Assembly (NCBI RefSeq): GCF_003704095.1
Contig: NW_020844262.1
Location: 310,001 to 374,000 of the forward strand
DNA: 64,000 nucleotides
Direction of reading: 5' to 3'
DNA from: Pocillopora damicornis
Lineage: Eukaryota
Below the pieces are notes generated by a model. That model had not been told where the DNA came from. It saw only the letters and a list, made by a program, of their open reading frames with translations, and did no database searches. Of the stretch, positions 52,259-53,920 are shown one piece after another; position 1 is the stretch's first letter; every line of letters begins with the position of its first letter. A program made the position numbers and the translations under genes.

Positions 52259-53920
52259 ATGGATACTCTTAAGGAATTATTTGGGCCAAAAACATTTAAC
52301 AAAATAAGCCATTTTACAGTTTTAATCTGGATCCTGATCGCTGTGATCTTCCTTGGCATATTTGCCGCCGTGGATAACACTGAATTCAGGTCTAATTTCC
52401 ACTGTGACGGAGCGAAGGGCGACATCACTGAATTCAATCGTGGAAAATGTTTCGATCAGTACGAGGGGAAATACAACAAATACAGTGTTCCTATCTATGG
52501 CTTCGTGATCATCAATTTCCTCTTTATTGGAATTGTTTGTCTTATTTACTCTCAAGTGGTGAGACCTACAGTCGATCAACTGTCGCTCGACCAAACTGGA
52601 AACAAGCTTTTTATCGCTTATTGCTTTCAACTATCCTTAAGACTTGTTTTACGAATTATTTTCATCATCCTACAAACTCAGTTGCTTTATCCTTTGAATT
52701 TTTCCACTAACTTTTACTGTGATTTAACCGATGGAACCACTCAGCTAAGGAATTCATGTAACAGCACCCAAAACTCTACTTGTTACGAATGTAACAATCA
52801 GCAGGCAATCAAGAAAACTTTCTGGTTAAACGCTGTCCTTGCAGTAAATGGAATTTTTGTCCTTGTAATTCTGATTGAAACCGTCTATATTTTGTTACGG
52901 GCATGGAAAGAAAGAAGTTTTATGCAAAACTCAGAGTTTCTTAGAGCACATCTAAATCCCCCCAGTAGCAATTCGCACCAAAAACCACAAAAGCAAGATG
53001 ACATTATCCCACGACAGCCAAGAGAGCGTGAACATCTTCCTGCCCAAGGCGAGCTGAACGAAACACGTGAAAAGAAAGGAGGAGGTGACGAACATGAAAC
53101 AGTTCCCCTACAGCAGGGAGAGCATGAGAATCTTCCCACCCAAAGCGAGCTGAACGAAACACCTGAACAGAAAGAAGGAGGTGACGTACATGAAACTGTT
53201 CCCCTACCAGCAGAGCATGAGAATCTTCCCACCCAAGGCGAGCTGAACGAAACACCTGAACAGAAAGAAGGAGGTGACGTACATGAAATAGTTCCCCTAC
53301 AGCCAGGGGAGCATGAGAATCTTCCCACCCAAGGCGAGCTGAACGAAACATCTGAACAGAAAGATGGAAGTGAAGAACATGAAACTGTTCCCCTAAAGCC
53401 AGGAGAGCATGAGAATCTTCCCACCCAAGGCGAGCTGAACGAAACAACTGAAAAGAAAGAAGGAGGTGACGAACATGAAACAGTTCCCCTACAGCCAGGA
53501 GAGCGTGAGAATCTTCCTACCCAAAGCGAGCTGCACGAAACACCTAAACAGAAAGAAGGAGGTGACGAACATGAAACAGTTCCCCTACAGACAGGAGAGC
53601 ATGAGAATCTTCCTACCCAAGGCGAGCAGAACGAAACACCTGAACAGAAAGAAGGAAGTGACGTACATGAGACTGTTCTCCTCCAGCCAAAAGAGCATGA
53701 ACGCCAACCGTCCCAAGGCGAGCTGAACGAAATATCTGAAGAGAAAGAAGGAGGTGACGAAGATGAAACATTTCCCCAAAAGCCAGGGAAGCATGGGGAT
53801 CTTCCTACCCAGGGCGAGTTGAACGAGACACCTGAACAGAAAGAAGGAAGTGACGAACAAGGAACTGTTCCCCTACAGCCAGGAGAACGCCAACCGTCCC
53901 AAGGCGAGTTGAAGGAATAA
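52259..53920 (+). CDS. Connexin-like four-TM channel protein with acidic 32-aa tandem-repeat C-terminal tail (553 aa, single coding exon)
   Basis: TM segments at ~aa 19-38, 77-100, 117-143 and 188-213. EL1 SNFHC...KCFDQY; TM3/EL2 LFIAYCFQLSLRLVLRIIFIILQTQLLYPLNFSTNFYC...YECNNQQAIKKTFW; TM4 LAVNGIFVLVILIETVYIL. Each parallels a connexin consensus block. The ORF is certain; the family assignment is by eye. Confidence 0.72.
   Translation: MDTLKELFGPKTFNKISHFTVLIWILIAVIFLGIFAAVDNTEFRSNFHCDGAKGDITEFNRGKCFDQYEGKYNKYSVPIYGFVIINFLFIGIVCLIYSQVVRPTVDQLSLDQTGNKLFIAYCFQLSLRLVLRIIFIILQTQLLYPLNFSTNFYCDLTDGTTQLRNSCNSTQNSTCYECNNQQAIKKTFWLNAVLAVNGIFVLVILIETVYILLRAWKERSFMQNSEFLRAHLNPPSSNSHQKPQKQDDIIPRQPREREHLPAQGELNETREKKGGGDEHETVPLQQGEHENLPTQSELNETPEQKEGGDVHETVPLPAEHENLPTQGELNETPEQKEGGDVHEIVPLQPGEHENLPTQGELNETSEQKDGSEEHETVPLKPGEHENLPTQGELNETTEKKEGGDEHETVPLQPGERENLPTQSELHETPKQKEGGDEHETVPLQTGEHENLPTQGEQNETPEQKEGSDVHETVLLQPKEHERQPSQGELNEISEEKEGGDEDETFPQKPGKHGDLPTQGELNETPEQKEGSDEQGTVPLQPGERQPSQGELKE

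Follow-up and report, generated by a model that had tools for sequence, protein, structure and literature searches.

A stand-alone copy of the connexin-like CxL domain with an acidic tandem-repeat tail in the genome of the coral Pocillopora damicornis

Gap-junction connexins are a chordate invention in the textbook view, which connexins in non-chordates overturn. CxL domains have been reported from anthozoans, one annelid and one brachiopod, and each coral genome has 4–100 copies (Butler et al., bioRxiv 10.64898/2026.06.13.731801, June 2026), and according to the same preprint connexin domains at the N termini of cnidarian NLRs had been annotated even earlier. NACHT, typically accompanied by LRRs, is found in 92% of anthozoan CxL proteins, with ~8% being NACHT-less, and the family joins the large-pore channel fold with receptors of innate immunity. 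The CxL coding sequence lies in a single exon, which in some clades ends at an exon boundary after the domain, and each loop carries two conserved cysteines, a 2+2 pattern shared with the epsilon-clade connexins (bioRxiv 10.64898/2026.06.13.731801). Channel activity has been shown for pmCxL30 of Pocillopora meandrina and for other CxL members, and AF3 hexamers and heptamers have been given for CxL paralogues. pmCxL30 is located at the plasma membrane and releases ATP and glutamate in a manner gated by depolarisation and CO2, with no gap-junction (dye) coupling; its CO2 gating needs K140 and R232, and an invertebrate carbamylation motif was defined as a Lys before TM3 in the form K-hydrophobic x3-x-hydrophobic (bioRxiv 10.64898/2026.06.13.731801). 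That work already describes the CxL family of anthozoans, an origin that predates chordates and a function as hemichannels.

The locus that we analyzed is one more member of this family, with minor architectural variation. It lies in a 64-kb window (the whole stretch of DNA that was examined) and consists of an uninterrupted ATG-to-stop ORF of 553 amino acids, taken from a program-made ORF list. A preliminary description, made by reading the letters of the window, had placed a connexin-fold channel at 52259-52910; that segment is real but covers only amino acids 1–217 of the ORF. Its reading as a connexin-related channel in a non-chordate genome stands, whereas the novelty that it implied does not, because the coral CxL family had already been described and functionally tested by Butler et al. 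Also missed were the 328-residue tandem-repeat tail and the NACHT-LRR fusion context of the family. The features of the gene, in positions of the window, are the following.

52259-53920, + strand: complete single-exon CDS, CxL domain plus acidic repeat tail (ORF list, RNA contigs)
52259-52933, + strand: connexin-like (CxL) four-TM domain, amino acids 1–225 (Pfam, family profile against PDB, Foldseek, VIA-align)
52316-52372, + strand: TM1, amino acids 20–38 (hydropathy peak 2.92; model helix 10–40)
52373-52492, + strand: putative extracellular loop 1 (EL1), amino acids 39–78 (family-invariant C49 and C64; alignment with the Cys motifs in EL1 of Cx31.3)
52493-52549, + strand: TM2, amino acids 79–97 (hydropathy; model helix 79–107)
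52613-52687, + strand: TM3, amino acids 119–143 (hydropathy)
52688-52819, + strand: putative extracellular loop 2 (EL2), amino acids 144–187 (cysteines and sequons; model beta strands 151–156 and 174–180)
52820-52891, + strand: TM4, amino acids 188–211 (hydropathy, segment 188–206; R214 follows)
53014-53886, + strand: 96-bp (32-amino-acid) tandem repeat, 9.1 copies, forming the acidic, Glu/Pro/Gly/Gln-rich C-terminal tail (TRF)
53918-53920, + strand: stop codon (ORF list)
53921-54957, + strand: 3′ untranslated region (RNA contigs across the stop codon)

A Kyte-Doolittle scan found four hydrophobic segments (amino acids 20–38, 79–97, 119–143 and 188–206), the first preceded by a short charged N-terminal segment (amino acids 1–17). 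The cysteines outside the membrane are confined to loops 1 and 3 (C49 and C64; C154, C167, C175 and C178), and all three N-x-S/T sequons (N147, N168 and N172) fall within the putative EL2. Both cysteine-bearing loops would thus lie on one side of the membrane and both termini on the other, an orientation that we infer. The AlphaFold2 model (mean pLDDT 70.6, with its N-terminal helix of low confidence) has four long helices and short beta strands in both loops, and hydropathy, cysteine placement and model together agree with the four TM helices and cysteine-bearing extracellular loops proposed in the preliminary description. A complex prediction with four copies of amino acids 1–225 scored 0.26 (mark, 0.32), and we count it on neither side of the question of oligomerisation. 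Conserved across the family are, in EL1, C49 and C64, which are invariant columns in both a first (A1) and a broader (A2) family alignment, and, in EL2, C154 and C178; C167 and C175 are extra cysteines in EL2 of the window protein. The window protein retains every family-invariant residue in these alignments as well as P78, which is near-invariant in the family and directly precedes TM2, and its cytoplasmic loop is ~25 residues shorter than in most homologues.

Like the anthozoan CxL proteins and pmCxL30, the window copy combines a homologous four-TM domain, two conserved cysteines per loop and a CxL region in one exon, and like pmCxL30 it has a K-hydrophobic motif before TM3, an Arg after TM4 and a pocilloporid host, here with at least 11 intact copies. 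Its relation to pmCxL30 could be followed through P0024, a pmCxL30-like protein that has the published pmCxL30 N terminus with Lys 140 and Arg 232 at the exact positions, and which the window protein matches with an E-value of 6.4e-52 and 43–48% identity. K116 aligns with K140 of pmCxL30 and is followed by L-F-I-A-Y, which fits the carbamylation motif, and R214, after TM4, aligns with R232; at the level of sequence, the carbamylation pair for CO2 gating appears to be kept. The homologues with a named source are from Pocillopora meandrina, P. verrucosa, Stylophora pistillata and Desmophyllum pertusum, and in a maximum-likelihood tree of 31 CxL domains the window protein falls in a polytomy inside a supported clade (98/94) that also contains pmCxL30-like and NACHT-fused copies. 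Unlike most CxL proteins, the window copy lacks NACHT-LRR (as do only ~8% of the family) and has a shorter cytoplasmic loop and two extra EL2 cysteines; its nine acidic 32-amino-acid C-terminal repeats are a feature absent from the preprint's account of CxL.

The explanation that we favor, and hold to be very probable, is that the gene is an anthozoan CxL member and a remote connexin homologue encoding a large-pore hemichannel subunit that acts alone or with CxL-NLR subunits. Homology, fold, topology, RNA-contig coverage, gene structure and NACHT absence were each read directly from the locus, and paralogues and connexin biology suggest the oligomer, the pore, its permeants and gating, and the role of the tail. 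By this analogy, subunits would span the plasma membrane with their two termini in the cytosol and assemble into a ring, a hexamer or heptamer; the ring would act as a large-pore hemichannel that releases small molecules, ATP for example, and is opened by depolarisation and possibly CO2, channel function being known only from paralogues 43–48% identical to the window protein. The shortened cytoplasmic loop could alter or abolish gating. A gap junction seems less likely than a hemichannel, as the three N-glycosylation sequons speak against head-to-head docking, and so does EL2 with its enlarged size and four cysteines.

Four RNA-seq studies yielded contigs over 52198-52620, 52669-53130, parts of the repeat and 53561-54957, with no joint within the CDS, in agreement with the single coding exon claimed earlier for the domain. 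Contigs running from 53561 to 54695-54957 cross the stop codon, again without a joint, and therefore support a transcript that is unspliced and has a 3′ UTR of ~1 kb, its ends approximate; depth was zero at 50500-51167 in all four RNA runs. An RNA run that contains the locus bears a coral-metagenome label. The coverage is consistent with transcription, the contigs carrying no expression level. A public collection contains an identical or near-identical protein (P0038), and in the wild-sample alleles P0038 and P0116 the first 262 residues have no amino-acid change, with one synonymous nucleotide change in 262 codons, too few for a selection test within what is a single species. Both alleles differ from the window protein in the tail only, differences that may be partly due to repeat assembly.

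That tail has 9.1 copies of the 96-bp repeat (TRF score 1193, 85% matches). Its 328 residues have a net charge of -55, are 21% Glu and are rich in Pro, Gly and Gln, and pairwise pN/pS among the repeat units is ~0.7. Composition, charge and this ratio fit a weakly constrained, probably disordered cytoplasmic tail, which we take for a scaffold or spacer. Two paralogues in the same genome (L016 and L013) have a CxL-NACHT linker to which the repeat tail is homologous, and the gene therefore looks, from its sequence, like a CxL-NLR derivative in which the linker was kept and expanded and the receptor lost. At least five paralogues of this genome (L013–L017) encode CxL and then NACHT in a single open frame, whether or not LRR is present, and besides several fragments there are about 11 intact CxL domains overall; N runs in the paralogue loci L013, L017 and L018 were neither filled nor used. 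Instead of NACHT-LRR, the window copy would carry an acidic, probably disordered tail of ~330 residues derived from the linker, and with only this tail it could work as a channel subunit by itself or in partnership with CxL-NLR subunits. CxL followed by a repeat tail is also the architecture of a protein from a different sample (P0040, 58% identity), which argues that this architecture has been maintained over time.

One could go further and suppose that the window gene and P0040 represent a maintained subclass of NLR-less CxL subunits, whose tail, an expanded CxL-NACHT linker, would allow them to co-assemble with CxL-NLR paralogues in mixed rings and, acting as decoys or regulatory subunits within a membrane-bound NLR channel complex, to tune receptor signalling or set a limit to it; we regard this as speculative and unlikely. 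A second copy is present in the window.

47749-49050, + strand: decayed tandem copy, CxL plus repeat tail (genome search, tblastn, three-frame translation, TRF)

This copy lies 4.5 kb upstream of the intact gene and contains stops and frameshifts (5 stops inside the match) and a deletion of TM4; a related 96-bp repeat is present in it at 48396-48992, in 6.2 copies. To the coral CxL family the locus adds a stand-alone transcribed copy that ends in a repeat tail and has a decayed duplicate next to it, an example of NACHT loss and of turnover by birth and death in that family.

The decayed neighbor raises the question of whether the intact gene is itself a truncated CxL-NLR relic, which lost its NACHT-LRR, is still transcribed, has ceased to work as channel or receptor, and is heading for the pseudogene state of the copy upstream. 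Besides that neighbor, the shortened cytoplasmic loop, the weak constraint on the linker-derived tail (pN/pS ~0.7) and the absence of NACHT from the entire window would all be expected of such a relic. However, the ORF is open over all 553 codons and has RNA contigs from four studies along it, every family-invariant residue is kept, P0038 and P0116 are unchanged over their first 262 residues (although they are from the same species and differ by 1 nucleotide), and P0040 retains the CxL plus repeat-tail architecture at 58% identity. We consider a decaying relic quite unlikely, and favor instead an intact CxL subunit.

The lack of NACHT could also be only apparent, if the gene model were incomplete and a NACHT-LRR exon were spliced on or lay past an assembly error, making this an ordinary CxL-NLR. 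The prevalence of NACHT among anthozoan CxL proteins (92%) and the exon boundary after CxL in some clades lend this idea some weight. Against it, Pfam scans found no NACHT in the ORF or in any large ORF of the 64-kb window, tblastn with five NACHT-bearing paralogues gave no NACHT match in the window at E ≤1, and RNA contigs continue unspliced for ~1 kb through the stop codon. Moreover, a polycystin gene in convergent orientation comes next downstream, and an independent Tara metagenome scaffold has the same gene with the same downstream neighbor. An incomplete model is therefore very improbable, and we treat the window gene as a complete, NACHT-less CxL member.

The relation of this protein to connexins is remote enough that single-sequence searches only hint at it. 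Pfam Connexin (PF00029) was the top match of the single protein, with an E-value of 7e-4 over TM3 to TM4 only and a score under the Pfam gathering score (19.8 versus 31.3 bits), and phmmer of the single protein against PDB returned connexins only, with non-significant E-values. Database searches collected 37 and then 88 homologues, many with precomputed PF00029 matches, and PF00029 was matched by all 22 of the 22 aligned family members (E ≤0.01, best 1e-10). The first family profile (A1) against PDB likewise matched connexins only, Cx31.3 with an E-value of 7.7e-6. With the broader profile (A2, including members of as little as 24% identity, run against 177,635 PDB sequences) Cx31.3 was again best, at an E-value of 2e-11 and with an alignment reaching from EL1 to beyond TM4, followed by Cx43, Cx46, Cx36, Cx32, Cx40.1, Cx50 and Cx26; the top 34 matches were all connexins (E-values from 2e-11 to 4e-3), and the first non-connexin was rhodopsin at 0.016, which we judged to be noise. 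HMMER aligned the TM3, EL2 and TM4 blocks to Cx32, Cx26 and Cx31.3, and the broader profile aligned the EL1 blocks (the first Cys motif and Cys-Phe-Asp/Glu-x-Tyr) to Cx31.3, reproducing the block matches to connexins in EL1, TM3, EL2 and TM4 that the preliminary description had picked out by eye; a tool-free reading of raw DNA had recovered the correct remote homology. The nearest ESM Atlas clusters were connexin clusters (0.95, 0.94 and 0.92), and the best 150 of 323 representative clusters (E ≤1e-3) were all strong CxL-like matches. Innexin, pannexin, LRRC8, CALHM, claudin and tetraspanin gave no match in any sequence search, which for innexin, pannexin and LRRC8 covers Pfam at E ≤10 and the PDB profile searches at E ≤1.

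Structure comparison pointed the same way. In a Foldseek search of the AlphaFold2 monomer against PDB, all of the ~47 top matches listed (ranks to 49) were connexins, with E-values from 5.6e-5 and TM scores of 0.5–0.68, and Cx31.3 was best; 6L3U, the best HHpred match in the preprint, was the best match here too. VIA-align placed connexins in the top 8 of 48,161 chains (Z 12.2–13.0, identity 15–21%), above pannexin-2 (Z 11.6), LRRC8A (11.3), pannexin-1 (10.4) and INX-6 (9.4), with 9–12% identity to pannexins, LRRC8A and INX-6 in the structural alignments; PRPH2 (Z 9.4) and CD20 (Z 8.8) scored under all connexins, and claudin and CALHM were absent from the top 50. Helical bundles give a high background Z in VIA-align, and the connexin margin over pannexin and LRRC8 is only ~1 Z unit, a margin so small on its own that the sequence evidence decides the assignment. 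It is scarcely credible that the likeness arose by convergence or from a shared large-pore fold, with innexins, pannexins or LRRC8 as the true kin or claudin, tetraspanin, MS4A or CALHM as an unrelated source: the closeness of pannexin-2 and LRRC8A over a high bundle background and the pair of conserved cysteines in each loop, which innexins also have, would fit that idea, but it is opposed by sequence searches devoid of innexin, pannexin, LRRC8, CALHM and claudin, by the higher structural identity to connexins, by a Cx31.3 profile alignment that agrees motif by motif from EL1 to TM4, and by an HHpred probability of 99.95% for CxL to 6L3U (bioRxiv 10.64898/2026.06.13.731801).

Profile, fold and language model together support the window protein, with its four TM helices, as a relative of connexins encoded by a non-chordate, a scleractinian coral; the outcomes named beforehand as fatal to a connexin reading (a rival fold, another topology, a chordate scaffold) did not materialize. 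Its likeness to chordate connexins (PF00029) extends to the four-TM fold, beta strands in both loops, a single-exon coding region and motif similarity in EL1, TM3, EL2 and TM4, with Cx31.3 closest by both sequence and Foldseek. Cx31.3 (GJC3) is a hemichannel-only connexin, and Cx23 (GJE1) is a connexin with two cysteines per loop. Unlike chordate connexins, the window protein shares only 14–21% identity with them, falls under the Pfam gathering score, lacks the canonical 3+3 pattern of extracellular cysteines in favor of 2+2, and has a larger, glycosylation-prone EL2, and judging from its sequence it probably does not dock into gap junctions. With innexins, pannexins and LRRC8 it shares a four-TM large-pore architecture (Z 9.4–11.6) and two cysteines per loop, whereas sequence similarity to them is undetectable and structural score and identity are lower than to connexins. 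The extracellular N-glycosylation sequons are a further point of likeness to pannexins.

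The intact CxL gene of the window (a connexin-like four-TM domain followed by an acidic repeat tail) is accompanied by a decayed tandem duplicate, and further CxL sequence was found elsewhere in the P. damicornis assembly (G000). These features and a neighbouring gene are as follows.

Window 47749-49050, plus strand: decayed tandem duplicate of the CxL and repeat-tail gene, 4.5 kb upstream of the intact gene
Window 48396-48992: 96-bp repeat array of the decayed duplicate, 6.2 copies
G000:C897:298721-299357, minus strand: broken CxL fragment with in-frame stops, about 11 kb ahead of the window start on the same contig
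G000:C2122:356148-356909, minus strand: full-length CxL domain in an open frame of just 267 amino acids
Window 55373-60000, minus strand: polycystin-type gene (Polycystin_dom, PKD_channel, PLAT), downstream of the CxL gene and convergent with it

The tandem duplicate retains about 35–40% identity to the intact gene, has lost TM4 to a deletion, and has a coding frame broken by five stop codons and by frameshifts. Because the broken fragment lies on the same contig, that contig carries at least three CxL copies, one of them intact. The copy on contig C2122 is probably the P. damicornis orthologue of pmCxL30, the stand-alone, functionally tested P. meandrina protein.

We compared the window gene (tail at 53014-53886) with its counterpart in a wild Tara sample (metagenome scaffold L019:1241-2905). 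The CxL domains differed at 1 of 786 nucleotides and the 3′ flanks at none across 1 kb; the repeat tails were only 95% identical and differed in length by one codon, a divergence due either to turnover of the repeats or to noise in the assembly. The polycystin-type neighbour was also present on the Tara scaffold. In the window it comprises one ORF with Polycystin_dom and PKD_channel (E 4e-32) and, upstream of it, a second with the PLAT domain.

Elsewhere in the window, four overlapping ORFs of 147–184 amino acids occupy both strands of 41095-41705, where Pfam matched none of them and Tandem Repeats Finder (score 200) found no repeat. Remnants of LINE-like retrotransposon sequence lie at 9513-11281, one ORF containing an endonuclease/exonuclease/phosphatase domain (E 3e-7) and the adjoining one giving a weak L1 ORF1-like match. 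Upstream of both CxL copies in the window, a 323-amino-acid ORF (44637-45608, plus strand) scores E 9.5e-23 against 7tm_1, the profile of rhodopsin-family GPCRs.
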